From Orbicella franksi (taxonomy: Eukaryota), in contig OZ116702.1 in NCBI GenBank assembly GCA_964199315.1, positions 22,010,001 to 22,074,000 on the forward strand: a stretch of DNA of 64,000 nucleotides. The letters are read 5' to 3'. Below the pieces are notes generated by a model that was not told the origin of the DNA, ran no database searches, and saw only the letters and a program-made list of their open reading frames with translations. The position numbers and the translations under genes were made by a program. Of the stretch, positions 17,413 through 41,076 are shown piece after piece (position 1 is the stretch's first letter; each line of letters starts with the position of its first letter).

Positions 17413-17712
17413 ATGGAAATTACAAACTGTGCCTTTTTCTGTCATTTTATTTTACTATTTGGCGTGATACAGTTCAAGCCGTCACTCTCGTGCGGCTCCA
17501 GGAACGGTTATGGAGGAAAAGGCCCGAGAAAACCTCTTATGCTAACGCAGAGCATTCCTGACACTAGTGAATTCAGTCAACAAGCCAGTGGACCAGCTAA
17601 GGGGAAGATATCTAGAAATTCGCCGGAGTTCGAAAAACTTGAGCCGTGTTATAATAACGGCATAATCTTTCGCGACGAAGAGGGAACTGGCGCAGATCGC
17701 TTGATGTCGAAG
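17413..17712 (+). CDS. hh: Hedgehog exon 1 (signal peptide and N-terminal Hedge domain)
   Basis: Hydrophobic leader then C27-G; ...GKISRNS...IIFRDEEGTGADRLMSK|GTAGGA; phase 0 intron at the canonical LM(S/T)x|RCK position. Confidence 0.97.
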
Positions 17713-17911
17713 GTAGGAGTGCTTTCGTTTGTTTACTTTTTATATCTTACCTTTCATCACTTTAAATGCACAGCATGTAACTTCTTGTGAGGTTTATGTA
17801 CACTAGATAGGTCAGCGTGCGGGGCGCGATGTCCATTCATTCATAGATTCACAACAACCATCGTAAAAAAATCCGCGAACTTCCCTCATGTTGTCGATTT
17901 TTTTTCATTAG

Positions 17912-18173
17912 CGATGCAAAGAGAAATTGACAACGTTGGCGGGTTTAGTGAAAGGAGAGTGGCCCTCCGTAAAGCTCGTGGTGACCGAGGCTTGGGACGA
18001 ACAAGACCAGCACTCGCCAAATTCGCTGCATTATGAAGGGCGAGCTGTCGACCTACGTTTGTCCGACCGGGACAAAACGAAAATCGGTCTTTTGGGACGA
18101 CTTGCTGTCGAGGCTGGCTTTGACTGGGTTTTGTACGAAAGCAGATCACATATTCACGCTTCTGTTCGCGAAG
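17912..18173 (+). CDS. hh: Hedgehog exon 2 (Hedge domain core)
   Basis: TTTTTCATTAG|RCKEKL...[10 protein letters not shown]...[21 protein letters not shown]|GTAAAT; Zn ligands (His of SLHY, Asp of RAVD, His of HIH) intact; 262 nt, phase 1. Confidence 0.97.
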
Positions 18174-18644
18174 GTAAATACTCTTAATTTAATTCATGAG
18201 AGCTTAAGTTAATGATTTCGGAATGCCAGCTTTTTCATTTATTTTTGACTATGTAGCGATGAGAATGTAGCATTTTGTAATATAATTCTCCAGTGATCTG
18301 CCCGCGCACATTTCAAATTTCAGCTTACCTCGCGAAATCCTCTTTGAAGGGCGTGCGAGTGTTGTTTTGAATTGGTTTGCAGGAGTAATAACTTTTGTAC
18401 CGCCCCTACGGTAACACGCAAATCCAATTTTAGAAATACAAAGGAAGCATGTTAAGTCATTCCGGTCTCAGTAACAAAGGTTATTTTTCTTTGCCAATCC
18501 TGCGAAATTCCGCCATTCACCAAAACAAACTTTCGTCCGCGTGTTACATTACAAAAGATGAAGCAGTAATTGATGGTCTGTTAATAATCTTTCAAGACAG
18601 AAACTATATTAATGTAAAATTGTATTTTTTCTGCCGTGTTTTAG

Positions 18645-19282
18645 ATGGTTTTTCCGACAAACCGTGGGATGGCTGTTTCAGCTCCGATTCGACAGTCAAA
18701 CTAGAAAACGGTGTTGATCTACAGGTCAGAAATCTCAAAGTCGGTGATTTTGTGCAAGTTATGACGCAGCAAGGGAAGACTGGCTTCAGCGAAGTGGTGA
18801 TGTTTGCAGATTACAAGCCCAACATACCACAAGCTTTGCACGTTTTGATCGAGACTAAAAAGCCCGCGAAACATATCACTCTCACGCCTTCACATCTAAT
18901 CTTCACAAGTAATTCCTCAGGGACACAGCTTCACTCAAAACATGCGGGCAGCGTGCTGCCGGGAGATTTCCTTTTGGTTTCAGCAGACGACGGACTTGTT
19001 CCATCGCAGGTAAAGAGGGTTTCTCTTGTTAAACGAACTGGCATGGTTGCCCCGGTTACCATGGAAGGAAATGTAATTGTGGATGGTGTTGTGTCTTCTT
19101 GTTACGCCATGATAAGCGATCATGAAATCGCTCACATGGTCTTCGGTCCTTTGAGACTTGTACATAGTTATGCTCCGAGCTTGTGGAACACTGGTGGTTT
19201 TCATGTTCAACAAGGGATGCATTGGTATCCCGAGTTACTTATGACAATCAACAAAGCTTTTGGCCTCGTTAAGCTCTCGTGA
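18645..19282 (+). CDS. hh: Hedgehog exon 3 (Hint domain and sterol-recognition region)
   Basis: Acceptor TTTTAG; WDG|CF cleavage site (Cys codon 18674); MFAD, LTPSH, APVT..G..IVDG..SCYA, AHMVFGPLR, HWYPELL motifs. Spliced CDS is 1200 nt = 399 aa. Confidence 0.97.
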
Positions 19283-22200
19283 ATTTAATGTGTTGATGAT
19301 ATAATTAATGGCACGACAAATTATATTCTTTCTACTGAAAGATGTTCTTCTTTGACGAGTTTTTTTTAAATAGCTGCTCTACTGAAAACATCAAGAAACT
19401 GCTCAATACCTTTGTCATTTCATTTCCATATGTTTAAAAAGCCGTACGAAAAAAAAGAGCATTATTATTTCATGCATTATTGTGTTGAGATGTAGAATTA
19501 TCGACAAGGTATTCTGCAGTTGTTATAAGTCTAAAAGAAATCTCCACTTTGATAAAGTCGACTTGGCGGTGTGGAAGATAATTTAGAGTCGCTGTTTCAT
19601 TTTGTTGTCTTCACCTCGTGACTTTTGTTCAAGAAATTTGCATTATATTTTTGTGTCATAATCCAAGCACTGAAACAGTAGTTTTGCTATCACAGATTTA
19701 TTTCTTGCGACATTTAAGCGAGGTTTCGTTCATGATAGCAGCATTTCTCTGTTTCCAAAGATTTTTTTATGCCTAAAGATATTGAGTGTCAATGAAATAG
19801 CTTAGTGTGTTAAGGAAACTAGGGCACCTCGAACATAAATTAAGATAAATTAACAACTATTTATGTCTCTATTGTACAGTATTACGTAGTTTTGTATGGT
19901 ATTGTATAAACGGCTGGTCACCGATGTACAGTCAAGAAACTTTTGGTTTAGAGTATGAACTGAAAAACGAAATATTATGAAACAAATATTTGTACAAAGT
20001 AATGCCTATAGTAGTAGGAATTATGATTTGTTTTACAATGAAACTAACTCTGAAATATGGAGTGAAGACTCCATGTTCTTTAACTTAATACACATTTTGT
20101 AGAGTTGTGGCAATGACAGTTGGAGACTGAGAAAGTCAACTATAAAATCTGATAAAAAAAGTAGAAAAACAGCCGAAAACAAAGAAAGGTTAGAAATATG
20201 TGAACGGAAAAAGATTTAACATTATAGACGAGGTGTAGTGTTGTTGTGTCTAGAGAGTTCTGGTAATTCTCGAAGTATTTAGATGTATTATTTTAAAGCC
20301 CTTTTCCAGGACAGTGGTGTATTCAGTAAAAAACTGTCCCCTATAATACAGGGCCTACTTTACAAGAGATTCGGTTGAGTCAAAGATTTTCTAGTTTGCA
20401 CAGAAGGCTCAAATTTAATATATTGTGCAACAGTCTTGTGTACAGAGGGAAGCCTTTCTCATTTTGTAGGTCAAATTCTTTTGATGCTCGGTTCACGAAA
20501 GTTTGTTTTCTCGCTCGCAGAGAATTGCCTTTATAAGGTTTGCTTCGTGATACAAGGTATCTAGTGACTTTCAAACCAGGTAGTTATTCCTGGATTGTGA
20601 AAACAGGGTGTTACTCGAGAAAAAAAAAAGTGCAAAAATTACACTCATGATTTAGTAGCAATATTAAAGCAAGTTGCAACGTAAACAGTCATTGTGTTTG
20701 TGAAATATCTGTTGTGGGTTGTTCCTGGCTTTCTTCAGCTGCTTCAAGTCATCTGTTTTGAATCTTCTTCACGTCAAATGGAGTAACTGGGTAGGAGAGA
20801 AAAATAATCTTAAAATTTGTTTCGGAGTGCTGCGAACCTTGATATGATCAATGGCCTTGCGACACTCGCGACCATGCCATTTTAAGTCATAAAATGGTAT
20901 CGTCGAAAATCCACGATTTTATGATCAGGATTTTCAATGTATAATGAAGTTCTTCTTGCACTCAGGACGGACAGGGCTTGTAAAATTAAATTAACACATA
21001 AAAAAATTTAATCGCGTCACAAGAAAGTCCGTCAGCACTTCGATGCAATTAGACACGAGCCGTCAACATTGTGCAAGTGGGCGTGAATTGTTTGAATTAT
21101 GTCCCCTCCACGCTCTGTCTTTTGAATGTTATGATCTGACGACTTCAACACAAATTTTCTTCAGTAAAGTAGTGCCACCAAAAACAGTGAGATACTAGGT
21201 ATTTCTTATTTCACAAAGGAACAAGGAAGCAAATCTCGCACTAAACGCCATCAGTCCTTAATAATTAATTAGCAACTGTGTTTTCAAAACAATATTACGC
21301 CCAGAGATAATTTGATTATAAACTGCTCTCATAAACAATAGTCGAGTTTATTTCAAGATATCTTCCCTAAATTGATAAAACTGGACTACAAACATCGCAC
21401 AAAATGCTAGCCTGAATGCTGCAGTAATGGCAATCTTTGTTACAAATTTAAGTTCGCTGTCCAAAAGAAACGGCATACTTTGTCTCCGAGAATGATTTCC
21501 TGTGGAACATGTCTTCGAGAGGCGTTAAACGACACGGCATCTGAAGAATCTTTTGACGTTGTATTTAAGGTGTTAAGTGGTTTTTAACGAAACAGATCTT
21601 GCGGTTACCTTAAGATCCGCCAATGATAACAGTTGAGCAGTGTCTGAGAACCATCCGACGCGCGCATCCCGCGTAGTCGAAAAGGTGTCAAAATGTGCGG
21701 CGAGGTCAGAGCTTCACGCACGGAAATAGAATTAAAAACAACGCAGAAGGAAGGTGTTAACTGTGGTAAACTCACCATGATATTATTTTGAACTCATCTC
21801 TGAGGCATTTAGATACTGAAGTTGTCGCTTCGGGTGAGTTTTATTTGCAAAACTCGAGTGCGTGTAAGAAACCACTCGCTTAATGGCAATGATGGCCCGA
21901 TGCAGAGCAGATTTCACTTCTTAAGGCAGACAGGCGACAAACGATTCCCACAATTAAATGATAAACTAGCAATTATCCGTAAGGGATACTTTACTGATGA
22001 AGGCATTGTTCGTGTTCATTAATATCCCGTGGACAGATCGGTTTCACGCAAAAAAAAAGAAACAAAAAATACATGTTCACTGTGACAAAGTGACCTGTAT
22101 TTAGGTGTGGGCGAGACTGAATGAGTCTGGCGTAGTATGAGACAAATCTTGATGACAAACAAAACCCCTTACTACACCCACTCGCTCAGTTTGCGACTGA

Positions 22201-25200
22201 ACTGATCGGTCTGGGAAAATCACTCAGAGTCACGGAAGATATTACTCGAGATTGCGACATGTTCTTTAAAATTGAACTCAAACGCTTTTTCCACAAAGAA
22301 GAATGGAACCTCAGGGTTAGTGAAGTGAGAAGTGCTTAAAAACTATTAACTAAATAAAAAAAACCGAGAACCTTGAGCAAGTAAAGAGTTGTTTAAAGAA
22401 AACTTGAGATACGTTGAGACGACCTTATCTTGAGCCTTGAAATACTTTCCTTAGTTGTTTCGTCGTTTGCAACGAGCTGAATCGACCGCGCAGTCTGCCG
22501 ATTGTACATGTTGCATTGTTGTCGAACTTGAGCCCTCGCGTGCATCCCACAGCTGATAAAATGTTCTAAAATAAAACTCTTTCATTTACTCCAATAAGTT
22601 TTTTGTTTACCTGAAAAAAGGAAGGATCCGAAGACTGAAACACTTCTGAGATGAGTAAAACTGACGGCATCCGAAAGGGAAACAAAAAATGATTAACAAA
22701 ACTATGACTTGCATCTGTATAACAAGGAGACGTTGGACAAGAAAGCAACGCAAGTTATTAAGTTGATTTGAAGAACAACGTAAAAATGGCATTGAAAGAA
22801 GGAAGGAAGCAAAACGAAACGAACAAAGAATTTAGCCAAGGGAAGGGCAGGTTGAGTGTTTCTTTAGTTGTAGCTCGCGTGGAGTAAGAATGAAGACAGA
22901 TTTGTTGTAAATGCGGAGTAAATCTTTGGTCAGTTATAGAATCGAGATAAGCGCTAAGTTTTATTATTTTTTATTCCAACAGCCGAGTCTGCAGCTAAGC
23001 CCTCGAACGGCTTTACTTTATTTATCATTTTATACATCCCTTTGTTTTGAACACGTGGACCAATTTCCAAAGAAATGCTATATGTCTCGTTTCTTCAGTG
23101 CTATGGTCAGATAAAATCTTTTTCATTGCCACAAAAAGTGGTCCGATGTTTGTGGAACGCCTTCTCTTGATATAACACTTAAAGGCGAGATATCACTGCT
23201 TATCTTACAACTAGCCGATAACTACAGCTCGCCAGACTCGCTGCTGCCACTGTCGGTAGTAGTGTTATTCATCACACTAGCCAACATGGCGTCCTCAGCT
23301 ACCCGGCAGCATTGAGTTTTAACACGAAAGTCTTTTGTCAGGTTTTCAAGGAGTTTCTAAATCAGATCAAATTGTACAAAGAAGATTAAATGGTAGCAAT
23401 TAATTAGGTTAATGTTTCTTTCTAAACAGTCTCCGTGCTAAGTGCCGAGTCCCTTTAACAAATGCGAAGAATGTTTTCTCCTGTACATTTGTGAATGTTT
23501 CTAAGAGATGCACCATGTCAAAGCACTTCAGTCCATCTCGGTGGTGTGTGAGTTTGTTTTTAACTGAAAAGAAGGATTGTTTTTCAGTCTACGAGCTAGG
23601 TTTCCAGTTGCTTTGTTTGAGCGTTCAAGAGGTGCACGTTCTACATGTCAAACACGCGCCGCGAATATTCGCGAATGTTAAGAAGATTAAAAACAGTTTG
23701 GCCTTGAAAATGTTATTAAACAACAAATCTCTTTTTGCATATTGTGGCTGTTGTCATCATTCTATTCCGCGGAAAACCACGTTTAATAACTTTTAGTATA
23801 AAGAACGGCTACTAAGATTTCCTCAAGGGGCGATTTAGTTTTTTTCAGTTTAGACTTCCCGTTTCAACTGATAAGACTTGACTTCGGCCAAATGGTTAAA
23901 TTGCTTCATAATGCAACATGCTTGACTAGAAAACACCAGGGTCAAAGTTTTTAAAACAATGGTTCACCTAAATCCGATTTTGTACTCAAACGATCTCAAA
24001 GGTGCCGCTTAAGAGTAATTTTGCGTGGGTGAAGAAGCCAAACGGTTTCACTCAACCAAAGATTACAAGTGTAGGCCGATTATCACGTCCTTTGAGGTTT
24101 GAAAGCAGGAAATATTTTGCTACTTATTTAAAAAGCTTGCATGTCTAATCCAGTTATCAAGTGGGATTTGTTTAAAACAGTTAAAATACGACCGAACAAC
24201 GTTGGAGAATTAAATAGGTTCTAAGCTTTCCTAACAGGGGCTTAGTAATATATGGTATGGAAAAGTAAACCTGCCTTCACTTGAATACATCCAGTTTTAC
24301 TTAATGTAAATGGGCTTTGCTTCCTCATTTACTGGTCAGCAATTGTTGCCGTTTGTTATTGAGCGTTCTTTGGAAATTTTGATACCAATTGCTTCATGTT
24401 TCAACTGTTCTGGGTTCGACGGTTGATGGGTTTCCCTTCTATCACGGGTTCTGTTTAAACCGATTAAGTAATGAAACAAAGTAGAGATTATTACACTTGA
24501 CTAAAAAAGTCTGAATAGAAATATATTTAAGACAGTTGAATGAAAGCCAAATTGCCATGTTCAGCTGGAAAGCATTTTTTAAACTGGCTTAAAATCCTCT
24601 TGCTACATGTAAAAGCGATAGCTGCCGACACAGTTTAGTTCCAGTTTGCTTAAACATTGATTAAAAATGCCCCGCAGTCTTCAAAAGCGTTTGTTCCCAC
24701 GAAAAACGCGTTTTAACAAAGAAAAAAAAAAAGGCTTGTATATGCCCTCAACGGGTCAATGATTGTCTTTAGTACGGGTGAAAAACTAAAGACAAGTATA
24801 ATACTTTTATCATATTTTGTTATTTGATTTCTACAAAACTTTAAATTCCTGTCCAAACTGATATAATAATTCCATTAGGAGTCGACAAAAATCAATCTTA
24901 GACTGAGTTTGGTGCATCATACCAAAAAAGACAAAATCAATTATGTCATTTATTCCTTTCACGACTGGGGTTTTCATTGCGATATTCCATCCTCATAAGT
25001 TCAGTGTTCATTATTTTTTCTTGTCCTCGTGGACATGACGCACGCAGGCTAAATTGAATGTGTAAGAGGAAAGTTGTGTACAATGGCGGGAAGATTTTAG
25101 CTGGATGTGAGTGGGTAGAGAGCATGAACTAAGCAGGGCATAAATATTCCCTCAGCATGTCTGAGCCACGGTGTAGACACGCTCATATGCTAAATACCTT

Positions 25201-26607
25201 GTTTTCTGCCTGGATGGTATCGAAGTCTCTTCAGCTGGGCACGCACGTTGCGTTTTGCTAGTTTCAATTATGTAAACAAGTTAGTACAGGAGTAACTGAA
25301 AATCATTGAACTCTCGACTTTTATTTGAACTTCACCTACTGTCCACAATATGTGCCGATGGGCAGAATTTTGCAGTCGATTAAAGTTTACAAGACAGATA
25401 GCAGTTTTGTTGTACAGTTGTTAACAAGGAACTTTAAGGTGTAAACCTAAATCATCTGTTTCGTTTAGTTTTTCATCAAAACTCAGAAGTACAGACGTCA
25501 CAGCACTTAAGATATAACTAAAGATAATTTGGAAGGGGAGGGGGGAATTCAAACAGATGTGATTGTGGATTTTAGAAATTGTACAAGCAGGAAGAGGCAT
25601 GAGCGATGAGTTTTGATCCAAATTGCTCCAATGAGCAACAAATATAAAACATGATCCTTCGCCACTGGCAACTTAGAACGTTTTTGTAACTTAAATTTCA
25701 ACCGTTTAGCATGGCTTACACACAACTGAAAGAACTTCTGCAAATCTTCTATAATTGAGGTGGGTGAAAACTCCAAACAACACGAGCACAGAATGAGTCA
25801 CATGACCTGTTTATAGCTTAGCTTCCAACCTCGTCAAACAACGAAATTTCGCTGGGCTATAGCGTGTGGTAAAGAAACTTTAACCGCTTAAAATATGACA
25901 TAAGATTGATTTCAAGCAAAACACAACTGAAAAGGTCTTGTCAATGCTTATGATACCACTAAAATTCCTTCTAACAGCCTAGTGGATAATTTACGTATTT
26001 CATGGTACATTAGACCTGTATCATAACTATCTCTTTTGTACGTTTGCTCGACATGATAACCGGTTAAACGAGAAATCCACCAGCTTTAGTCGCGTGACTA
26101 ATTGCCACGTGGTAAATTTCCTGAACAAACCACGAGCTTTTACCGCCTGTCACAGTCGCGTGGCGGAATTCAATGAGCGTTTTGAAAATGTGTGGGAGGT
26201 TTCCTTCCTGCTGCCGTCATACGCTAACAGCTTTATTAGACTCCTGTCGAGTAAGCAGATCTTTTTAATTGTACAACAAGCGACTTCCTTCTGGCGCGTG
26301 ATTTATTTTGTCAGTGGGAGCGTTTTTCTCAGCGAGAAAAAGCTTGCACGCTGTATTTGGTGGAAGTCTTTCTTTCGAATAGTAAAGAATTTCGGCCATA
26401 GTTAATCACTCTCAGGTCGAAAACAAAGAATAGAAGGTCTGCATGCGACAGGTATTTTCTGTCTTAACATGCTCTGAAAACCGGAGAATTGACTCTTTTT
26501 CTAGTTCATCTTGTTTCAGATTTTTTCTCTGAGTGGGAAAAACTGCTACTGAGCAGTAAATAAAGGAGACTGCAAGTTTGGCGGGATCTTACCGCAGAAA
26601 AAGGTGG

Positions 26608-26646: not shown

Positions 26647-27666
26647 CTCCAATTGCTTCTGGGAAGAATTTCACCTCTTACCTTTCTTGGCGAAGCTAAC
26701 AGCATTAAGTCTAATTTAGGAAAATATTGACTATTTGGTAAATCGGAGAAATAGAAGAAAAGAGGAGTAATATGTGATAATCAATTTATTCTCGTTTTAT
26801 TGATTTTAAACTCGTGTTTCCTTTTACTTCTCTTCAGTCCAGGGCATTAGACATTAGAAAGCCTTACTGTTAAAGAGTATTGATATGTTGCACCAACTCA
26901 GAATGACACAGAAGAAAACATTCCCCTAGTAATTGTCAATGGGCTTTCATTTATCTTTTTTCTTAGGCTTAGTTAATAAGTCTGTGGCTGAAACCTTAGT
27001 GTGTGACCATTCAAATGAAAGCCATTCTGAACAGTACTTTAAGGGGTTGTTTATCTGATGCTATATAGGGAAGTTGGTTCTGTGGGCATCGATATGTTAA
27101 GTGCAAGTGACAGCTTTTGCTTGGCAGTCCTCTCTTTTGATATTGTTCGTTTTATTCTTATTTTCTTAGTGGAATTTTTGGAGCTTTATTCAAGTCAACT
27201 TACGGATACCCCGAGACGGATAATTAGTTCACAAAAGTGCATCAGCATTCAAATGTTTGTATAGAAAACTATTGTGTGAATCTAAAGAAAGTTCTTACTT
27301 CGACAAGCGGCTCTAACAAACACTCTAGACATCAGCCACTTAGCAGCATCAAAAGCCAGTTCTCGAAGCATTACTTTTAAGTGTAATGTCAACATAGTGA
27401 TTCTCTTTGTAATTGTCTTTGCCACCTTCAATGGAAAAGCCCTGGGGACGAGGTTGCTGGTGCGGAGAATTTGTACAAACTCTCTCTTCCCTCTAGCTAG
27501 ACGTCACAATAATATGTCTAACGGGTTTGCAGGATAACGGCCGTGGGCACCGCCACTTTTAGTCTAAGGAATTGAAAGTCTTCCATTGGATGTCTTTTAT
27601 GCCACAAATGGTCGCTAAGTATTTGCAAAAAGGGAGCATTAGAAAATTTATTTGCAGAGTGGGCCA

Positions 27667-28209: not shown

Positions 28210-29207
28210 ATTTCAAGAGAATAATATAATCGGCTACACCGTGGTTCTAAGAAGTACAAGTCCTTTAGCCTCGTCACTTTTCCAGCGCCCATGAAGCTTT
28301 AACAATCCCTCAGAAACGTTATGCGAGAGGTCGTTACTATAGAGGTTACCCCACCAGAATGTAAACTATGGAGGCCTTAATCTTTGGGACCATAGCCCAC
28401 ATCCTTTAAAGCGTCCTTGAATATCTCCCTACAACGGGTGTTTGATAATTTGGCATTGCTAAGGGTATACCCTAACTTCTTCTTTGTTAATGGCCTGAAC
28501 AAGGGCAACTGATTAGATAGGTCAATATCGGCTACTTGGATATGCCTACGCAATACCGCCACAGGACGATAATTACTCTCTAACTTAGAAATATACACAT
28601 AGTTCCCCCTATACACATCTGTTTTACTCTTTGGTACAAATACTTTAAAAACCTCATCGTGAAAGAATATGTGGTTGGGCTGAATGTTACCTAATTCCGT
28701 CAATAAAACGAAAAAATCCAGCAAAGCTTGAGGAGGTTACTGCCGCAATAGGTAAGTCCTTCAGCAATGCACCATCAGCACCAAATCTGTTGATAATTCT
28801 TTTAACGACGTCAGCATCAACGGGTTTTTTCTCGCTAACTGAAAGGCTACTTGTTCTCCTGGCATACGCAATCATGCTTCTGCAGCAGGCGTTGTCCAAA
28901 GGATTAGGGCCGTCTCAGGAGTGAAAGAATGTAGCCATTTAACCGCGGCATGGAGCAACACCATTGAGGCGGGGGATCTAAGCTGTTGATCTAAGTTAGA
29001 TAAATAAAGGGCGACCACGGGGACACAAAAAGGTATCTGAACAGAAATCTGTCTACTCTTACACCACATGAAAAACTTTTTAATTTCTTTGATGTACTTT
29101 TTCGCAGTAGGATTAGCCCTGGAGTTAAGCAAGACACTAAATAAGGAATTGCGGTAAGGCCTAAGAGCAGAAGGGAGTTACGTCCAAACTTTACTTGCAA
29201 TTGCGAC
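28210..29207 (-). pseudogene. Tyrosine recombinase of the DIRS-like element
   Basis: SRANPTAKKY...FAGFFRF (catalytic R), GLHSLHSGG (HxxR mutated to HxxH), LKLHGRWKSD, frameshifted KDLY (catalytic Y). Confidence 0.88.
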
Positions 29208-29837
29208 CTGCAAGAAAAATTATAAATATAAAGTTTTATAACAAAGGAAAAGGAAAGGAAAATAATACTTGAGTCAAACGACCTAACAAATAAAACACCT
29301 AAAGTACATACCAAAGGAAAAACTATTAACTCTATAATATCGTAATGTAACGGCGCTGGGCATAAATTGACCACGCCTAAAACTCCTGACCCAAAAACAA
29401 ATGCCCGACGGTCGCAGGGATAGACAAACCTGACAAAACATGGAGGCTATAGAAAAGGCGTGCAAAAGAAGCAACATTTATAACGCTTAACTAATAGCGT
29501 GGCGAGAAAGGCTAGCAAAATTTTACACATGTTCGGCCACATTGTCTAACACACAGCGGATTCAAAGTCAGCTCGTGAACATAAAACGGACGGACACGGC
29601 TGCCCTGCACTAAGCTTCGTGCAATATGCGAGGGATAAATCAGACCCTCTTGGCCCCTTTGGCACACTCAAGAGCTTCAGCTCACATTCCTGTGAGCAAT
29701 TGCCGCTGCATATGACCATTGTCATTTCTCTAAACACATCCATCCTCCTCATGACCAGTGTCACATGACTCTTGAAAATCGAACCACAGTAACCCTTTAA
29801 GTCAGCTTTCAAATAAACGAAACGCGCGAGAATTTCT

Positions 29838-30598
29838 TTACAAATAATCCAGTCTAAGGGCGACAACGTTGCCTGTAAAATGTACAGAGCCCAGGAACGA
29901 ATTCAAATTTCTTTCTAAAGTGAGACCCTCAGTTCCATTCTGTAGGAAACAACCTTTCATGAACCGCTTGTATTTACTTGTAAGTAGAGGCCAGAAACTG
30001 GACAAAGGCCATAGTGGTATCACGATGGTAGCCCTCCCCTTCAGGAGACTCAGATAATGGAGGGCATGAGCAACAAGGGGTACCGGAGAAACCACTAAAG
30101 AGCTCTCAGACTCTAGATTTTGAGCAAAAAAGTCCACCCCTGATGTCGCCGGGTTCCAAACACGGGAAATGAATCTTGGTAGTTTCGCTGTATAAAAATT
30201 AGCAAAACAGTTACCTGTGTGCGGACCCCATAACTCTTCTAAACGGAGAAAAAATTCCGGAGTAATCTGCCAATCATCAAAGTCAATAAGACGACTGATA
30301 TAATCTGCTTCCTCATTTTCCGTTCGCAGGATCTACTGGACCTCCAAACGAATATCATGCTCAGCGCAAAACTGGAAAAGTTTGACAGCTAGGCTATGCA
30401 GATCTAACTTAATACTTCCCTCTTCGACAATTTTCGCAGCCTACTGACTATCCGTAAACCACTTGACGAGGGAACCCTCCAGAACTGGGGCAAATGATTA
30501 GAGAGAAAAATCAGTGACGGCAAGCTCTCTCCGAATAGAACTTTTGAAGCATTCGGATGGTTCCCAAAGTCTATGACGATATGCTCCTCATTAAGGGT
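29838..30598 (-). pseudogene. RNase H C-terminal half plus Dam-like adenine methyltransferase domain
   Basis: HRLWEP..RELA..KWFTDSQ..ENEEADYISR (RNase H), then IDFDDW..LWGPHTGNCFANFY..WNP..GVDFFAQ..ATIVIPLWP..FWP (DIRS MT domain); in-frame stops present. Confidence 0.82.
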
Positions 30599-30790
30599 GA
30601 CTCAGACTTTTTCTTTGTCCCACGCTCGTGTCATGTTGATTAATTCACCTTCACATTTCATTACCGAACTTAAAATTCACCATCCTTATTAACTTATCAC
30701 TACTCACGATGAATTCGATAGCGTTGATCCTAGCAGTATGCAGAACACCTATCATATATGAACTCAGTTAAATGACCTTGCTCTCCATGA

Positions 30791-30863
30791 GTTCTCGTAG
30801 CTCAGTGGATAGAGCGCCCGCCCGGTGTTCGGGAGGTCATGGGTTCGATTCCTGTCGGGGACT
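30791..30863 (+). ncRNA. tRNA-like Pol III unit (SINE-type; nominal anticodon GGT), copy 1
   Basis: Acceptor GTTCTCG/CGGGGAC, D arm GCTC/GAGC, A box TAGCTCAGTGG, B box GGTTCGATTCC, T5 at 30869-30873; C33 and a 31-39 mismatch argue against a decoding tRNA. Confidence 0.7.
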
Positions 30864-31051
30864 CAGACTTTTTCTTTGTCCCACGCTCGTGTCATGTTGA
30901 TTAATTCACCTTCACATTTCATTACCGAGCTTAAAATTCACCATCTTTATTAACTTATCACTACTCACGATGAATTCGATAGCGTTGATCCTAGCAGTAT
31001 GCAGAACACCTATCATATATGAACTCAGTTAAATGACCTTGCTCTCCATGA

Positions 31052-31124
31052 GTTCTCGTAGCTCAGTGGATAGAGCGCCCGCCCGGTGTTCGGGAGGTCA
31101 TGGGTTCGATTCCTGTCGGGGACT
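31052..31124 (+). ncRNA. tRNA-like Pol III unit, copy 2 (identical to copy 1)
   Basis: Same sequence as 30791-30863, followed by T5. Confidence 0.7.
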
Positions 31125-31221
31125 CAGACTTTTTCTTTGTCCCACGCTCGTGTCATGTTGATTAATTCACCTTCACATTTCATTACCGAGCTTAAAATTC
31201 ACCATCTTTATTAACTTATCA

Positions 31222-32411
31222 ATACTGATCTAATTCAATTTTCTCCTTCCAATGCTGGAGACTTAATGTAGACAAAACGCAGTGCCTAGTCAAGATTCTG
31301 GAGATACTCCCGGAAACTGACTGGTGATGTAGAAATAATTTGCCCCGTGAATGACGTTAATTTTCTAGCAGAAATAACGAAGCCAGAGTCAACAATACTG
31401 TTAATAGTACTGAGTATTTTGGCAACCTCCTATCGACGATTTCAATGGTTCCGCGAGCACTGTCCCATGTTAGACCCAACCAATCGATTTGTTGGTAAGG
31501 TTCCCATATTTATTTCTCGTCATTTGTCATATAACCTGCCTCACCAAGATCAGTTTTTACTGTTTTAACTATGCTACTACACGCTTGGCGATCTCTTTCT
31601 ATGGCCCAGCCATCATCAAGAAAAATAGCAATGCATATGCCCCAATGTCTCCGATGTTTTTCCAAAGTCTTAAGCGTTTTGGTGAAAATGTGAGGCGCAG
31701 ACGATGAACCAAAAGGCAAAACTGTAAACACGTAAAACTTTGTGAAATTAGAGCTACCAAGCTTCCAAGAGAAACCGAGGTAGGTCCGCCCTTCAGAGAA
31801 AACATAAAATCTTCTATCATAAAGTGGGACAATACAATTTTCCCGTCTTCATATTTGACGCGCATCTATCTCAGACGCTAATTAATGTATCTTAAATCAA
31901 TAATGAGCCTCTTTTCGCCAGTGACTTGAACGGAAACTGACAAGGGATTGACCACCAACGAAGGTACGACAACTTCAAGAACACGACCCGACTCAACTAG
32001 TTCACGTATAGCATCCTCAACAAATTCAGCATCGGCAAGGGATGATCTGTCGTTTTTAACTCCTGCAGTTTCAGGAAGACTAAGCAAAGGTAGCATGTAT
32101 CCTCTCTCTACAAAATTAAGAATAAATTTCGAAGTTCCAATGCGTTTCCAAAATTCTAGTTTTCTTCGAAGATTTCTTTTAACATTTACAGGTGGCGGAT
32201 GGTCAGTCAACTCAAACTCAAACAATTCGCGTTCACAATGTACCTGTGCAATATCCGAAACTTCCTCTTCAAACACCTCACTGCTTAGGACCGAGGTGGG
32301 GTTGTATTCCATTTCTGGGGCTCGACCAAGCGCTGGTACAGTCTCTTGCCCAATGGTCGAGCTTAAAGCATCTGAAGCATCGTGCGCGATCCATGTAAGC
32401 CTCTCTGCCGC
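31222..32411 (-). pseudogene. Reverse transcriptase of the DIRS-like element
   Basis: LEFWKRIG..GYMLP..VVNPLSVSVQ..KRLIIDLRYIN..FTVLPFG.SSAPHIFTK..IAIFLDDG; stops, frameshifts and an apparent deletion after FMFS. Confidence 0.9.
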
Positions 32412-32816
32412 CTGGAAATAAATGAAAACAAAGGCAGTATCAGACAATGGATAAACAACAACAGATTAAAGGAACATATCTGAAAGAGGGTGGGCGGGCG
32501 AGTTATACCCGTGCATAACAGAGAACGTGACCGGCTCGAAGGAGGGTAGGAGGGTAGGGTTGCAAGCGAGAGAGATTGAACGAAACTGCCGTAAAGTATA
32601 AATAGAAAGAAAAGACCAATCCTCCAACACCTAACACAGAAAATCCAGTGAGGAATGTGACGCTAAAATACCAGCGGAAAATGCATGCACCTGATCACAT
32701 TTGCCTTGCTTTCACATTTGCCGTCCAGTAATAACTAGCCGGCCCTAGACTGGGAACGATTCACCGACCGTTACGACAATTCGCGGAGCCATACATGACG
32801 CAAATAATGGTCAAAT

Positions 32817-32828
32817 CAAGATGGCGGC
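32817..32828 (+). promoter_or_regulatory. YY1-type motif overlapping the NHEJ1 start codon
   Basis: CAAGATGGCGGC, exact YY1 consensus. Confidence 0.5.
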
Positions 32829-33036
32829 AACAGTTCGGAGAGAAACATCTTGGAGGCGTCGTTGGAAACCAGATCTTAACTCTCAACCATGGAAACCCTT
32901 TTTCATTTCAGACAAAAATTTTCTAGTCAAGTCGATGTTCGTGGAGATGGACTGCTCCTATGAATTTTGCTTGTGGGATTCCAGCACTTTCTGGCATGAG
33001 AAAGTTGAACAAGACACCTTCAAGCGACGAACAAAG
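32821..33036 (+). CDS. NHEJ1: NHEJ1/XLF (Cernunnos) exon 1
   Basis: LNSQPWKPF...NFLVK...FWHEKVE...RRTK|GTCAGT resembles human XLF LLMQPWAWL...LLAK...VWHEQVD...QRAK; same phase 0 intron before ELN. Confidence 0.9.
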
Positions 33037-33292: not shown

Positions 33293-34628
33293 CTTAGACT
33301 CATAATTTTAACAGCTTTTTACCTTAAAGTTTTATATTTTAATTCTTTTCTAGTTTACGGAAAGGGGATATTTCTATAGTTAGGATATTTTCTCGTACAG
33401 CTTGGTTATATGTCACGAGTTAAGTTTTAATTTAAGCTCAAATAGATTGTTCAGATATTTCCAGGAATGATCATTCTAATCTCGGGCAGATCCTTGGACA
33501 TTTGTGGGTTTGGAAGATCTTTCAGAAAACTCGACACCCCAATACTCTGTAGACTGGTTTCCGTTGTGCTCGTAACAATATTGTTTTTTCCCAGAATACA
33601 CACGAGGCCCAAATCGCATTTCTTAATTATCAGTTTGTGATTTTCAGGAGTTTGAGTTAGAATTTCATGTTAGAGTTAGAGTTTTATGAAAGACATATTT
33701 GATCTATTGTCTGAGAAGCTTATCATTTTCAGTATGTCCTCTATCAGGGAAAGAAATTTTATATCCACTTGCAACTTAAAAGATTAGAGCATAACTTACT
33801 ATAATGTGAAATTGTATTGAATACATTTCATAGCTGTTTGATAACCTTTTTTCACAGTTAACTTTACTCATTTGCATTACAAGATAATCCAGCATGTATG
33901 TAAGGCAATATTTGTAGTTTCTGCCCGAAATTGCCTCGCCTCCATGTTAGATTACATTGTAATGCAAAGAGGAAAAATTAATCTTTAAACGGGCTATTGT
34001 TTTATTGCACTTATGATTGGACATAATATTTATCATTATTCTAAAGTCTAGCCCAGTTCCACATGTGCTTGCATCAGGTATCTGTGGGACAGTATGTTAC
34101 CCTTACTTAACTATGCTTGAACTAACTGGAATACTAATCAGGCTAATAAGAATGCTAATTAACTGAGCTGGGATGTCACAGGGCAATCTTTGCTGACGTC
34201 ATTGTTGACATAAAGAAGACATAAAGAACACATCATGTCAGATATGAATTGACTTTTACATGGTGAAGTTTTAAGCTCTTTTGATCCATTATTGAAGGAG
34301 ATAGTGGTTTTAAGAAACTGCAGAATTTCTGGGTGGCAAAAGTGTTAATGGGCCCATACATTCTTTGTGAAATTTTGAGTTTTTAAATCTACATTTCACC
34401 ATAAAGCTGAAATCATACACTGGTCTATATTGCTTGAAATGGTTTGACAGCATTCCCTTTGCTTTCTGAGAAAATGGGAAAAATGGGAAAATGGGAGAAG
34501 TTGCCAGAATTGCTGAAAGTAATGACTTGTTAGTATCCCACTAGCACTTTTTGGGCAAGTTGTAAATGTTGTTGTCATATGACAAATTTTTTTAAAAAAA
34601 TGTACTGTTTTTTTTTTTTTCTCAGTAG

Positions 34629-34775
34629 GAGCTAAATCCAAATGTTGAGGCGAAACTGTCATACTTACTGAAATTTGTACAGAAAAGTGTAGAAGAATGC
34701 AATCAAAAGGAAGAATCAACATTTACAATAAATGAGGTTGGACTACAAAATGATTTTTCTGAACATCCTTGTAAG
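34629..34775 (+). CDS. NHEJ1: NHEJ1 exon 2 (donor ambiguous: 34736 or 34775)
   Basis: T-rich CAGTAG acceptor; ELNPNVEAKLSYLL (human ELNKRLTAP); two in-frame donors AG|GTTGGA and AG|GTGATT. Confidence 0.8.
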
Positions 34776-34850
34776 GTGATTTACAAAATATTCTTTTATA
34801 AAAATTCATTACAATAAAGATTTTTAACTGGGTGCTTTTACATTTGGTAG

Positions 34851-34949
34851 GACGCTGATGATCAATTGATTGTGAAAATGAAGACAAAGCTACAGGCAGG
34901 TGTGCCATTTGTTTGGGAGTTCCACTGTTCAGTCGGACAAAAGGACATG
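34851..34949 (+). CDS. NHEJ1: NHEJ1 exon 3
   Basis: DADDQLIVKMKTKLQAGVPFVWEFHC (human [20 protein letters not shown]); donor ATG|GTATGT. Confidence 0.9.
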
Positions 34950-35024
34950 GTATGTAATAGGTAAATGAACAAACATGCAAGAACATGCAAGCTCCTTTTT
35001 ATTACACTCAGGTATGTAGTGTCG

Positions 35025-35252
35025 AGGTTAAGTCTGTATATGAGCCAAGTGACCCATCAGACTGGAGCTTATCCCAGTTTCTGTAGCATGAAGTGATTAG
35101 GAGTATTTCTACTCCCCCCTGGATGGGATGCTTGTCCATTGCAGGGTTACCCCCCCAGCATCAAGTTTATACACGTGGGCAGAGAAAGGCACTGTCAGAG
35201 TAAAGTGTCTTGCCCAAGAACACAACACAATGTCCCCCAGCCAGGGCTTGAG
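35025..35252 (-). mobile_element. CORE-like SINE in NHEJ1 intron 3
   Basis: Minus strand TGTGTTCTTGGGCAAGACACTTTACTCT...GTGCCT; close relative at 35711-35954; degenerate relative at ~37130-37310 (+). Confidence 0.7.
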
Positions 35253-35359
35253 GCCCACTTATAAAACCAAAGCAAATAAATCTCTTCTCATTGTGTTCAT
35301 CTGTGCTGTATTCTAGTCCAATTACATTTTGATCAGCAATAGTTTTGTTTGTTGTCAAG

Positions 35360-35498
35360 GTTGGATCACAGCTGGTTCAGCCAATGTTAGCCATGATTAG
35401 CGAGTTACAGAGACGTCAAACTGAGCTGTGCATTCTGCTGAGGAAGAAAGATCTGGAGATTTTGGATTATAAGGGTTCAGGAGTTCGCTTGTCAAGAA
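35360..35498 (+). CDS. NHEJ1: NHEJ1 exon 4 (coiled-coil stalk)
   Basis: VGSQLVQPMLAMISELQRRQTELCILLRKKDLEILDYKGSG (human VSQHLIRPLMGM...LLHMKDLEIQDYQESG); 139 nt, phase 1. Confidence 0.93.
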
Positions 35499-35710
35499 GT
35501 ATGGTCTATGTCACATTGATTTTTTATTAATGAAACGGTTGGCACAATTGTAGAGCACACTTCTAGCTCAACTTTCATTTTCCCAGAGTACCAAAATTGC
35601 CAATATGTACTGCACATTGCACCTAATAGTCACTCGTAATTTTGAACTGTAGAATTATCTCTCACTTCGCCTCCTTGCCCAGAGGCTAACAACTAACACT
35701 TCCATAGGAA

Positions 35711-35954
35711 AAGGTAAAGTCTGCATACGAGCCAAGTAGCCCATCAGGCTGGAGCTCATCCTGGTTTCCCTAGCACAAAGTGACTAGGAGTATTTTTACT
35801 CCTCCCTGGACAGGATGCTAGTCCATCGCTGGGTTACCCCCAACATTAAGTTCTCCAGTACCCATTTATACACCTGGGTGGAGAAAGACACTGCAAGAGT
35901 AAAGTGTCTTGCCCAAGAACACAGTGCAATGTCCCCAGGCAGGGCTTGAACCCC
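35711..35954 (-). mobile_element. CORE-like SINE in NHEJ1 intron 4
   Basis: Same family as 35025-35252 (shared AGAGTAAAGTGTCTTGCCCAAGAACAC). Confidence 0.7.
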
Positions 35955-36190
35955 GATGAATGACTAGACACTGAAACTGGACAGTTCAATAACCATAGTA
36001 TGAATTTGTCCTTGTCCAATTTGGAAAGAATTGAATTAAAACGAAATTCCTCTGACTGCCAAATTGGGCTTCGTCTGCAGACCGTAGTCTAATTTAGCGG
36101 TCATCAGACTTTTATTCATCCAGTTTTTTCCAAATTGTACAGCATTTGATCCTATAACATACACTAATATTTTAATACTCTTTGTTTCAG

Positions 36191-36252
36191 AAAGCCTTGG
36201 AACTACTGAGTTTGATGAAAACTCCTTCAAAAGCAAAATGATTCTTTCAGCG
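36191..36252 (+). CDS. NHEJ1: NHEJ1 exon 5
   Basis: TTTGTTTCAG|(K)SLGTTEFDENSFKSKMILSA|GTATGT (human RLKTEPFEENSF). Confidence 0.9.
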
Positions 36253-36705
36253 GTATGTCAGTTTAGTTGTTGAGTACTATTCATGCAAGAGCTCAATTTG
36301 TTTTTTTATTCACAAGATATGGTATTAAAAGTTAGCAAATAAAAATGACATAAAGCTCTTGTTTTAAAAGAAGAAAATAAACGATAAAATACGTTGAAAA
36401 ATGCTAAATCATGTACTACAGAATTACAATTGAATTTCAGTTTTTCATGGCGTCTGATTGGATCATGGAATCCTTTGTGCAGACATCCGAAGATGTTTGC
36501 AAAATTTTCGGACAATACTTGGTTATCTTCAGATGTCTTCGGTCAAGCGTCAGCGATCTTTAGAACAGTATCACTTTACTTGAGACCAGTGTGAATTTTA
36601 TTCGCGGATTAAACACATCTGTTAAAAAGCTTACTAAGTAATAAACGTGGAATGTTGGCTAATTATTTTGTGGGACACCTCGTAGATTTGTACATTGCGT
36701 TATGC

Positions 36706-36857
36706 ATAGACCCTTTTCATAAATGGTGCCTAAATTTGAATAACAATACTTATATATTCATGCGAAAAATCTCTTGTTCGGAAGCATAAGTACGAGGAGT
36801 AAGGATGTACAAAGTATTGTCATTCAAATTTAGGCACCATTTTTTCAAAGTTTCTAT
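36706..36857. mobile_element. MITE with ~46-bp imperfect TIRs
   Basis: ATAGACCCTTTTCATAAATGGTGCCTAAATTTGAATAACAATACTT / AAGTATTGTCATTCAAATTTAGGCACCATT...TCTAT. Confidence 0.75.
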
Positions 36858-37349
36858 CGCTATTGAAAACGAGGTTTTTCATTATCAGTGAGTCGAAAGT
36901 ACTTGTTTGCCGCGCTCTGTGATTTCTAGAAATAACGTCATAAAGAGCTCTAACCAATCAGGAGAAACTTGCTGTTTATAAGCCAATCAGGAGTCGAAAA
37001 ATAATTGCGTCTGGAGATACACCCGTTTTCCCGCGTTCAGCGTCGTTTGCATGTTTTTTTAGTTTGCCTCAAGGTCTTATTAGTTCGTAGATCTTAAACA
37101 GTTTAACGTGAAGTGTCATGAACAAACTGTTTTAACTCCAGCCTGGCTGGGTTCGCTGTGTTAAACTCTTGGGCAAGGCAATATTTCTCCTTTTTCCCCA
37201 GAGGGCTATGGACCATATATTCAGGTATCCCGTGTGAATCATAGGGCAAACTTGGCCCATATATTGTGAGTTAACTACGTTAAACTAGCATTCCACACAG
37301 GGGAAATAAACATTTATAAAATTGCAGTATTCAGAGAGGAAGCCACATC

Positions 37350-37640
37350 GGATTTAGCTGATTTTCATGCGGGGTCGAATTGGAATTTGGAAGTGTTGGC
37401 TTTTGTGGAGGAAGGAAAACCGGAGAACCCGGAGAACACCCCTCAGTGCGACGAGCGACGAGCGACGAGTGGGGTCTGGTAGAGAAAAAGGGTAGGTTAC
37501 GCGCCCGTCCGCCCGCGCCTTCTCATTTTTCTCTTTCAGACCCCGCTCGTCGCGCGCTCGCTTTTTCGATCGTCCCCACATATGGCACCAGGACGAAATC
37601 GAATTGGGGTCATTGGTTAGGGTTGAACGCTCTCACCGCT
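37350..37640 (-). mobile_element. SINE-like repeat interrupted by a MITE fragment (~37440-37580)
   Basis: GGAAAACCGGAGAACCCGGAG block, then an inner IR GACGAGTGGGGTCTG / CAGACCCCGCTCGTC, then CCCACATATGGC. Family recognition is from memory of coral repeats. Confidence 0.45.
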
Positions 37641-37990
37641 ACGACAAAATTCTTAACGAGCCATACCGTATTTGAGGTATCCTGAAGAGCGAATCAAATT
37701 ACAAATGGCTAGTGGAGAAAAAAATATCGAAGGCAAACTCGCTGATCTAATGATAAAACAGTTGAAGAATTCGATTGTAATTATGATTTGCGTAGTTGTG
37801 ATTAGGTTGGTTTTGGTTTCACAACATTCAAACGTTAAAAAACTCCTTGAAATCAGCTATGTCAGCCCTTTCCAACGACAGGAAATTATCAAATGAATAA
37901 CGTAGAATTAAGATTACGTTTCTAATGCAAGAGAATATGTGAAAGGCCTTAAATTTCACATCTTCTACATAGTCACTTGCATCCTTCACT

Positions 37991-38150
37991 ATCTACGGGT
38001 ACATTACGAACAACGTGACCAGCTCTCAGTTAGCATCCGTATCGCATAGGTCATGGGTTCGAATCCCGTTCAAGCTTCAATTTTTGTGGAGGCATTATCT
38101 TCACCTCTGCTTAAGTTGTGTACATAAGTGCGATGATAATTCATGTACTT
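37991..38150 (+). mobile_element. Degenerate tRNA-derived SINE (B box only)
   Basis: AGGTCATGGGTTCGAATCCC (B box 38055-38067) shares AGGTCATGGGTTCGA with the 30791 unit; A box lost. Confidence 0.55.
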
Positions 38151-38679
38151 ACATTACGTTTCTAAACCTAAAAACAACTTTCTTGTGATTTCTTTCTAAT
38201 TATTTTGTTGCAAGTTGTTTTAAAATTATTCTCTGTCTAGTCCGGAAGGGCCGTGTAAATCACTTGGAAGTCTATTTTCTTCTCAAGTTTAATTCATTTA
38301 GACCTTCCTAAATCTTAAAAATCCTTATTGGTTTTGGCTTTTGGCTTGTCTGTTTGGTGTTTTTCTTCCTTATGAAGTATTTGAAAAGTTTCTTTTTATT
38401 TTTTAATCCTTTTATATCTTATCAGTCAGTTCACTCCTTTTTTGTTTTCAGTTGTTGTTGTCTCTTTGTTGTTGTTCTATCTTAGTCAACTATTTGAAAT
38501 TCTTCTTTCATTCCCAAATCTGCTTAAATCCACGTCAGTCCTAACCATCCTTATTTCTCTTTAGCTTGTTATTGTCTGTTTGGTGTTTTTCTTTCTTTCT
38601 AAACTATTTTTGAAGGCTTATTCGATGTGAAGTATTGTATATTTTTCCTTGTGTCTACCATCTCCCGTTGCACTCTCAG

Positions 38680-38794
38680 GGATTTGAAGACGCTGTGAAA
38701 GAAGCTGCTACAAAAGGATTTGACGATGCTTCGTGCGAGCTTTACAAACAGATCAAGATTAAAACAGCATGGTTGGCAGAAAAAGATTTACCTG
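38680..38794 (+). CDS. NHEJ1: NHEJ1 exon 6
   Basis: CTCTCAG|GFEDAVKEAATKGF...ELYKQI...DLP G|GTAAGA; phases fit exons 5 and 7. Confidence 0.82.
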
Positions 38795-38817
38795 GTAAGA
38801 CATAGAAAGATTTACCT

Positions 38818-39259
38818 GGAGAAATTTGAAAACGCAACAATCACAGGTTATTTTGGAGTTTGAAGAAATTCGGCGAGGGAAATCACTTGATTCTCGAGAC
38901 GTCATCGTTTTCGAAAAGCTCCGTTTTCAAAATGTTTTCCGTCCACACTGAAACGAAAGCTGGCGTTTACAAATTCCTCCGTTTTGAAGGGCGTTTTCGA
39001 AAAGCTCCGTTTTCAAAATGTTTTCCGTCCACACTGAAACGAAAGCTAGCGTTTACAAATTCCTCCGTTTTGAAGAGCGTTTTCGAAAAGCTCCGTTTTC
39101 AAAATGTTTTCCGTCCACATTGAAACGAAAGCTAGCGTTTACAAATTCCTCCGTTTTGAAGAGCGTTTTCGAAAAGCTCCGTTTTCGTGGCGGATTACGG
39201 TGTGGCCGGTAGGCGAACCGTAGAAATAAAGCTGAGTTTTCAAATTTCTCCGGCGTAGT
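38818..39259. mobile_element. End-truncated MITE with an internal 86-bp tandem array (38907-39186, ~3.3 copies)
   Basis: GTTTTCGAAAAGCTCCG recurs at 38907, 38993, 39079 and 39165; same family as the single-unit copy at 45562-45773. Confidence 0.85.
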
Positions 39260-39553
39260 TTTGCTTTTAAACGTTGTTTTGACAAAGCGATTTTGCACCG
39301 AAGAAATTCGCAACATTTAATTTTGTCTACACTCGGTGAAAACGAATACTCTTTTAAAATAGGTTGCGGTTTTCAGCAGATGAAACCTGTTAGTATGAAG
39401 CATGATTTATCCACAGCTACATATATTCAGACATGTTATGAGTGGTTCTCGCTGGAGTCTGGAGAAATCTTTGCAGCCGCTTACATTGCTTCAATATGCG
39501 ATATAGCACTATATGGTTTATTTTACATTTACTATTCCACATGATATTCTATT

Positions 39554-39795
39554 AAGCAATTAGATTATGAGCTCGAGGTTTCTATCACACATAGAAATCG
39601 AGAGCGAATAATCTAATTGTTTTAGTCGTATAAATCTACTAGTCTTTCAAAACTTTATCTAAATACTCCTCACAGACACTTGTTAACAAGCGCACATTGC
39701 TATGCTTCTCACTATCTACCACAGAATAGATAGTGGGTAGCGTAGCCAATCAGAGAACGGCATTCGTGATAGAACGCTAGTAGATTTATACTAAT
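39554..39795. repeat. Hairpin repeat (39554-39622) followed by an IR-bounded block
   Basis: AAGCAATTAGATTAT / ATAATCTAATTGTTT; then GTATAAATCTACTAG...CTAGTAGATTTATAC; partial duplicate at ~39900-39990. Confidence 0.7.
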
Positions 39796-40196
39796 CGCAG
39801 ATATCTGAGAATTGTGTGTGATGTGGAAGAGTAAATGTAAAATAAAACACAGACACCTCGAAAACGCAATGAAGCGGCCTTAATTTTGCTAACAACCGCA
39901 CACTGCTGGACTATTCACTGTCTACCACAGATAGTGAGTAGCGGCGTATCCAATAACGGTATGGCATTCGTGACAGAACGCTAGTAGATTTCAATGAACT
40001 CACCGTACTCTTGGACGTCTTGTGCTTTTTTGCTTTGTGGCGCACACGCTAGCTGCCCCTAGACAGATGTTTTGTAACATGTCGATAAAAAGAACAACGC
40101 AACGAGGGGCACAAGTAACTCTAAAATCAATGTTCCGAACTAGTTAACAGCGAGTAAGGTGTGCTGAACTGCGCCTTGTTTATTGTATTTTACTAG

Positions 40197-40426
40197 AACC
40201 AGAGGAAGATGATGAAGACCCTGATGATATTTACGGGTCAATAGCAGTTGGAGGAGCTGTGGGGGGCCCCAGTGCGCCTTCGTGGACTGATTTGCCCCCA
40301 CCATCCCTCCTAGGAAAGGACGGCGAAACCTTAACAACGTCCCCTAGGGGATCCCCCAGGAAAACGCCTGTCACATCACCTACAAGGTCTTCCGGGATGT
40401 CATCGCCTGCTAATTCACCGTCAAAG
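40197..40426 (+). CDS. NHEJ1: NHEJ1 exon 7 (acidic then S/T-P-rich disordered tail)
   Basis: TTGTATTTTACTAG|(E)PEEDDEDPDDIY...SPRGSPRKTPVTSPTR...SPSK|GTAAAC; bridges phase 1 to phase 0. Confidence 0.78.
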
Positions 40427-40983
40427 GTAAACAAGAAGAGTGGAGATAAAGGATACAGGAGATTAAAGGGAGTGGTGTAGGGGGATGGAGGGAGCGAAGT
40501 AAGAGTATGCGATATGTCGTTGGGTTGCTAGGAAAGGTATTCGAAGTTTAAAACTGAAAAACTAATTTTCGATGCCAAAAATTTGTTTTCTTCGTGTCTT
40601 AATAAGTTTCGTTCTTAAAACGGCTACCTGATGTTACTTCAGAACTAGAACTAAAGTAAGTCACATCTGCCAATCAGCTGTCAATTACAACAAACACAAA
40701 TAAGTTGACGAGCCAATCAGAACTCGAAACCATAACATGCTGAGCTCGGGAAAGCGCGTGTAAGCCACGTCCCGATTGGATTGGGTATTGCGCAATGTAA
40801 TTCGCCTGATTGGTGGAAAAAATGTACGTCTGTTCTGATTAGTTAGAAAGCGGCGTAGTAGTTTTTCACCCCTTATAACAAACCGCTGGTCTAAAAAGTA
40901 AAAACGGCGCATAATTTTTGGATTGCATAACCCCTTCCACGAATTACCGAATTTTTTAATAATTTTGGATATTGTTTTTACAG

Positions 40984-41076
40984 GACGTGGAACTTCAAAG
41001 ACGAGAAGAACTGCAGAAGAGACTAGCCGAGGAAGCTGAACGAAAGAAAAGGAAAAAACGCAAGATTAACCTTTAA
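40984..41076 (+). CDS. NHEJ1: NHEJ1 exon 8 (basic C-terminus, NLS/Ku-binding-like)
   Basis: TTGTTTTTACAG|DVELQRREELQKRLAEEAERKKRKKRKINL*; human XLF ends KRKKPRGLFS. Confidence 0.82.
   Translation, partial: DVELQRREELQKRLAEEAERKKRKKRKINL

Follow-up and report, generated by a model that had tools for sequence, protein, structure and literature searches.

Linkage between Hedgehog (Hh) and Nhej1, the gene for non-homologous end-joining factor 1 (XLF), has been reported for amphioxus, sea urchin, sea anemone, the coral Acropora digitifera and, at IHH, vertebrates (Irimia et al. 2012, Sci Rep 2:433, PMC3364491). In the text of that survey bearing on the pair, the linkage is judged ancestral and, among the vertebrate copies, is kept at Ihh only; Nhej1 is described as the 'upstream neighbouring gene' of Ihh and lies upstream of amphioxus Hh as well, where the Nhej-Hh region spans ~82 kb, and the vertebrate Nhej1 introns are described as containing an Ihh enhancer together with elements conserved in tetrapods. 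The same text gives neither Lmbr1 nor Rnf32 as linked to Hh in invertebrates, places the origin of the Shh-Lmbr1-Rnf32 block between the two vertebrate genome duplications, and suggests that this block replaced an older one with Nhej1. Our literature searches returned no paper on hh-NHEJ1 linkage beyond this survey, and none on non-coding elements around coral hh genes. Here we analysed 64,000 nucleotides of the stony coral Orbicella franksi (C5:22,010,001-22,074,000 of a 497-Mb assembly; this whole stretch is called the window below), in which intact hh and NHEJ1/XLF genes are adjacent. We consider it likely, with a probability of roughly 0.85, that the pair in the window is the coral form of the Hedgehog-Nhej1 (XLF) microsynteny ancestral to animals, with an hh regulatory field and XLF as its bystander. 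A preliminary description of this DNA had proposed that the linkage is older than the split between cnidarians and bilaterians; this is correct but already known, since the 2012 survey came to the same conclusion. The same description had named hh-LMBR1 as the linkage usually regarded as ancient, which the survey contradicts, its text treating the Lmbr1/Rnf32 linkage as a vertebrate novelty.

The Orbicella locus resembles the published cnidarian cases, Acropora digitifera and a sea anemone, in holding the same gene pair, and differs from them in coming from another coral lineage, its hh belonging to the robust clade. What it adds to the survey are exact gene models, the orientation with hh upstream of XLF, the content of the gap and the location of the conserved non-coding DNA. 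Its two genes were modelled as follows:

17413..19282, + strand: hedgehog gene, exons 17413-17712, 17912-18173 and 18645-19282, 399 amino acids
32821..41076, + strand: NHEJ1/XLF gene, 8 exons, 353 amino acids, with head domain, coiled coil and basic C-terminal tail
32821-33036, 34629-34736, 34851-34949, 35360-35498, 36191-36252, 38680-38794, 40197-40426 and 40984-41076, + strand: XLF exons of the spliced model

A complete hh gene and a complete NHEJ1 gene, co-directional and ~13.5 kb apart, had been claimed for positions 17413 to 41076, and each part of this stood: the first limit coincides exactly with the hh ATG and the second with the XLF stop, and in the spliced models, both on the + strand, 13,538 bp separate the hh stop from the XLF ATG. 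The three-exon hh model has GT-AG introns and no in-frame stop. Pfam recognises HH_signal (PF01085) at 17404-17790 (E 1e-19) and 17927-18187 (E 2.4e-34), in exons 1 and 2 and over profile positions 17-161, and Hint (PF01079) at 18449-19282 (E 2.5e-49), with the Gly-Cys-Phe autoprocessing site (G/CF) at the domain junction of the spliced protein (...WDGCFSS...). The model begins with a hydrophobic leader, a putative signal peptide, followed by ...SLSCGSRNG... with the presumptive cysteine of the mature ligand, and this region aligns with the full-length coral Hh proteins P0016, P0021 and P0028. In tblastn, the hh exons are matched by P0001, a protein derived from a transcript of this species or a very close one; its sequence departs from the translation of 17539-19279 twice, by Gly/Glu in exon 1 and by Lys/Glu in exon 3, a difference consistent with allelic or population variation. 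The closest named relatives of the gene are those of Oculina patagonica (85%) and Desmophyllum pertusum, both of the robust clade.

HH_signal was found at three loci in the 497-Mb genome, the gene on C5 and two loci on C11. The first of the latter (C11:23418727-23421383; L011 4647-7383) is a second complete hh with HH_signal and Hint, has ~35-53% identity to the C5 gene and has no XLF beside it; the other (C11:12144109-12145871, at 12.14 Mb; L012) matches the signalling domain only and may be a hedgling-like gene. In a maximum-likelihood (ML) tree the hh of the window falls in a scleractinian Hh clade (support 100/99), which together with Nematostella P0141 forms a cnidarian clade (92/94) that is sister to bilaterian Hh (93/96), and the C11 paralogue at 23.42 Mb is a long-branch outlier. 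Because of this placement, the XLF-linked gene is, as judged from the tree, the conservative cnidarian hedgehog paralogue, orthologous to a Hh of Nematostella and with bilaterian Hh as its sister group.

The XLF model was built by tblastn with Desmophyllum pertusum XLF (P0040) as guide; it contains no stops, and 299/353 residues are identical to that annotated protein. Both XLF domains exceed their Pfam gathering cut-offs, the head (PF09302, 32821-33087) with 34.1 bits against 24.6 and the coiled coil (XLF_CC, PF21928, 35345-35530) with 40.1 bits against 27. A phmmer search of the full library with exon 1 returned 85 proteins, and full-length homologues annotated as non-homologous end-joining factor 1 were retrieved from Actinia, Patella, Acanthaster, Patiria, Lytechinus, Branchiostoma, Ptychodera and Holothuria. 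A Lys/Arg-rich run, predicted to correspond to the region of the Ku-binding motif, closes the last exon and is common to all full-length homologues retrieved. That the gene is some other member of the XRCC4/XLF/PAXX fold superfamily appears improbable in the extreme: exon 1 matches human NHEJ1 in the PDB only weakly (E ~0.09), which would fit such a relative, but all PDB matches are human NHEJ1 chains, two XLF-specific Pfam models are satisfied, the homologues called NHEJ1 extend over seven phyla or classes and share the basic C-terminal tail with the model, and the PF09302 search of the genome found no second, better candidate. With a single PF09302 locus in 497 Mb, XLF is a single-copy gene.

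The pair extends beyond one species and one genus. In Desmophyllum pertusum (GCA_029204205.1, MU826849.1), from a second coral family, hh lies at 571460-573028 (-) and XLF at 539345-551456 (-), in the same order and orientation as in Orbicella and separated by ~20 kb that contain no annotated gene. The annotated Desmophyllum Hh (301 amino acids, OS493_026943) lacks exon 1; tblastn finds the exon for the signal peptide and N-terminus just upstream (L001 9711-9989). XLF adjoins one of only two full hh genes of the Orbicella genome, and this adjacency is far beyond chance because XLF is single-copy and the same pair is linked in chordates too. The linkage predates the cnidarian-bilaterian split, as it occurs in amphioxus, sea urchin, sea anemone, Acropora and vertebrates (PMC3364491). 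The order of the genes is another matter: as the preliminary description had said, it is opposite to that of vertebrates, the text of the survey placing Nhej1 before Hh in chordates, whereas hh precedes XLF in both Orbicella and Desmophyllum.

Conservation around the two genes was measured as the fraction of sequence in collinear chained blastn matches of the window to the contiguous region of Desmophyllum, with the following outcome:

10507..17412 (6.9 kb), no strand: upstream of hh, 68% aligned at ~75% identity
hh introns: 100% aligned
19283..26303, no strand: first 7 kb after hh, 47% aligned
19283-20698, 21019-21998, 22175-22261, 23082-23303, 23876-24031, 24657-24756 and 25965-26303, no strand: aligned blocks after hh (blastn)
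next 1.9 kb: 4% aligned
retrotransposon segment: 0% aligned
XLF exons: 99% aligned
XLF introns: 7% aligned
6 kb after XLF: 29% aligned
42432..47161, no strand: aligned blocks downstream of XLF (42432-43450, 43741-43804, 46281-46753 and 46916-47161), with stops in all frames

An unbroken aligned block runs from 14337 to 20698 at 77% identity, about equal to that of coding exons, and ~3.3 kb of conserved non-coding blocks occupy the hh-proximal half of the gap. Many of the blocks flanking hh, including part of the upstream region, are shared with a third coral (L010, ENA ERZ25071797), and the blocks downstream of XLF sit 1.4-6 kb past that gene. Candidate regulatory DNA thus appears to hug hh and to flank XLF while lying outside the XLF introns, a distribution that would fit XLF being located inside a compact hh landscape or at its margin. 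Enhancers inside the coral XLF introns are unsupported by conservation between corals. The locus can be set against the two vertebrate hedgehog blocks on this basis. With the IHH-NHEJ1 block it shares a tandem, co-directional hedgehog ligand gene and NHEJ1, with regulatory DNA (candidate in the coral) towards or into the neighbour; it differs in that vertebrate Nhej1 lies upstream and carries an intronic Ihh enhancer, whereas coral XLF follows hh and has introns with essentially no conservation from one coral to the other. With the SHH-LMBR1-RNF32 block, whose ZRS limb enhancer lies in an LMBR1 intron, it shares a bystander gene caught in a hedgehog regulatory landscape, and it differs in that no Lmbr1-like gene was seen in the 64-kb window.

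Several observations weigh against reading the window as an ancestral linkage in which XLF is the bystander of an hh field. Apart from Orbicella and Desmophyllum, species were checked in flanks of at most 10 kb, in which negatives are uninformative on longer-range linkage, and within such flanks the pair was not reproduced outside Scleractinia. In the third coral, the 10 kb that follow hh contain no XLF exon. The Nematostella hh orthologue, at ~2,311,064-2,312,951 on OW051986.1, has no XLF within 10 kb on either side, by annotation and by tblastn, and a villin/gelsolin gene lies 6-9 kb downstream of it; Actinia XLF has no hh between -10 kb and +6 kb, where the contig ends, and an MRCK kinase gene lies 8 kb upstream. 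No hh gene and no tblastn match to one was present within 10 kb on either side of XLF in GCA_910592395.2 (presumably a nemertean), Patella vulgata, Acanthaster planci and Ptychodera flava, and in the last three the 10 kb downstream of XLF are gene-free. Within the locus itself, the near absence of conservation from the XLF introns does not suit a bystander with intronic enhancers, and the conserved blocks past XLF may have a target other than hh.

Linkage over longer distances is compatible with these negatives, as the amphioxus Nhej-Hh region spans ~82 kb (PMC3364491). The negatives are the evidence for regarding the adjacency as a coincidence or a scleractinian peculiarity unrelated to vertebrate IHH-NHEJ1, given that the tight pair was found here in two stony corals only and that the ~10-kb flanks in four bilaterians and two sea anemones contained no partner gene. 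We consider this explanation very unlikely: the negatives reach no further than the 10-kb flanks, XLF is present once, so that an independent adjacency to hh in corals and in vertebrates would have a chance of ~1 in 10,000 per lineage, and the survey's text reports the linkage for four invertebrate lineages. In GCA_910592395.2 (OU342994.1), a gene with Folate_rec and GSDH domains (L003 16812-22720, -) follows XLF at a distance of 4 kb and is convergent with it; this is the architecture of Hedgehog-interacting-protein-like genes, and its position may be a coincidence.

A more serious competitor accepts that the linkage is ancestral and holds that it persists by inertia, the genes being close together in anthozoan genomes that are slow to rearrange, with no selection involved. 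In corals hh comes first and in chordates Nhej1 does, the sea anemones have other immediate neighbours at hh and XLF, the villin-like and MRCK neighbours found there are absent from the chromosome-scale coral contig, and only a small part of the XLF introns can be aligned, all of which counts in favour of inertia. On the other hand, retention for >600 million years in cnidarians, echinoderms, cephalochordates and vertebrates, as the text of the survey has it, is hard to obtain without constraint, XLF is flanked on both sides by conserved non-coding blocks, and an Ihh enhancer is described for the vertebrate Nhej1 intron (PMC3364491). On balance, inertia alone seems to us somewhat unlikely. A larger conserved block around hh and XLF found no support: the tubulin genes that share the contig are 6-12 Mb distant, and the villin-headpiece and CNH-domain genes that correspond to the sea-anemone neighbours are on other contigs, with none on the chromosome-scale contig that carries the pair.

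In our preferred reading, that of an ancestral linkage kept by an hh regulatory field, hh as a developmental gene would have a dense cis-regulatory field reaching several kb to each side, into the gap and possibly past XLF. XLF, a housekeeping repair gene, would be a bystander inside this field or at its edge, and breaks between the two genes would sever hh from regulatory DNA and would be selected against. What has been kept would then be proximity rather than a fixed order or intronic enhancers, because the coral order is reversed relative to chordates and the constrained DNA lies outside the XLF introns.

Among the conserved non-coding sequences, two elements of ~175 bp stand out as diverged paralogous copies in inverted orientation on either side of hh, recognised by alignment and by nhmmer:

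10633..10809, + strand: conserved non-coding element, upstream copy, 6.6 kb before the hh ATG
21472..21649, - strand: conserved non-coding element, downstream copy, 2.2 kb after the hh stop

Both copies occur at equivalent positions in three corals, the counterparts being at 2213-2392 and 13623-13803 in the Desmophyllum locus (L001) and at 2591-2761 and 12574-12751 in the third coral (L010), where the downstream copy is 83.7% identical to that of Orbicella. An nhmmer profile made from upstream copies only finds the downstream copies with E values of 1e-24 to 6e-28, and the converse search gives 5e-19 to 2e-23. Orthologous copies are 70-84% identical and paralogous copies 61-68%; the duplication is therefore older than the split of the three corals. 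In Nematostella, the nhmmer search for the element gave a non-significant match only (E 0.17-1.2), located 2.6 kb downstream of hh and in matching orientation. Two other identities for the element were rejected. A repeat family is contradicted by BLAST searches of the 497-Mb genome, in which either copy retrieves itself alone, and a structured RNA is unsupported, as there was no Rfam match and no compensatory pair in RNAalifold. Its invariant 19-nt core recurs elsewhere only on C11, at 26126778, 26136139 and 26143578 (+), with the same spacer bases and a spacing of 7-9 kb, probably as part of a tandemly duplicated segment.

The invariant blocks presumably resemble SMAD, GATA, T-box-like, CRE and ETS sites. 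To our knowledge, the coral is an animal without CTCF. From the arrangement of the copies one may tentatively suppose that an ancient inverted pair encloses the stony-coral hh regulatory domain and serves as boundary or loop anchor or as a duplicated enhancer, and that the hh-XLF linkage of 600 million years would be held by proximity to this compact hh domain and not by enhancers within XLF; we regard this proposal, taken as a whole, as doubtful.

The gap also contains the following features:

28210..32460, - strand: decayed retrotransposon, lineage-specific, with RVT_1 match, 0% aligned to Desmophyllum
30791-30864 and 31052-31125, + strand: two tRNA-Thr(GGT)-like units (Rfam, ARAGORN), inside the retrotransposon remnant

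The only open reading frame (ORF) of the hh-XLF gap that Pfam recognises is a remnant of reverse transcriptase (PF00078, 31510-31731, - strand), and the Pfam search of the other ORFs in the gap and flanks gave no match beyond reverse transcriptase. The absence of any counterpart in Desmophyllum marks the retrotransposon remnant as a lineage-specific insertion. hh and XLF are consequently neighbours without an intervening gene, the gap containing the retrotransposon remnant, the tRNA-like units and the conserved non-coding blocks. The preliminary description had seen only transposon debris here; this stood for recognisable coding matter, of which the decayed retrotransposon is the sole example, and failed for the conserved non-coding blocks of the hh-proximal half, which it had overlooked. 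The two tRNA-Thr-like units have the same score each and are 261 bp apart. A short repeat at 26979-27054 and 59221-59275 has 82-90% identity to several spots in the XLF-flanking locus of Desmophyllum (L002 ~8700-8960 and 31866-31940) and is probably a small mobile element shared by the two corals.

Hh-Nhej1 is a deep microsynteny of textbook type, and on it rests the published case for the Shh-Lmbr1 limb-enhancer landscape as an innovation of vertebrates that took the place of an older Hh-Nhej1 block. The Orbicella locus is a further coral instance of this known ancient linkage and changes nothing fundamental in that picture. As candidates for cnidarian hedgehog regulation it contributes the reversed gene order, the conserved non-coding DNA centred on hh and lying outside the XLF introns, and the inverted element pair, the last of which may serve as a modest lead on how hedgehog is regulated in cnidarians.

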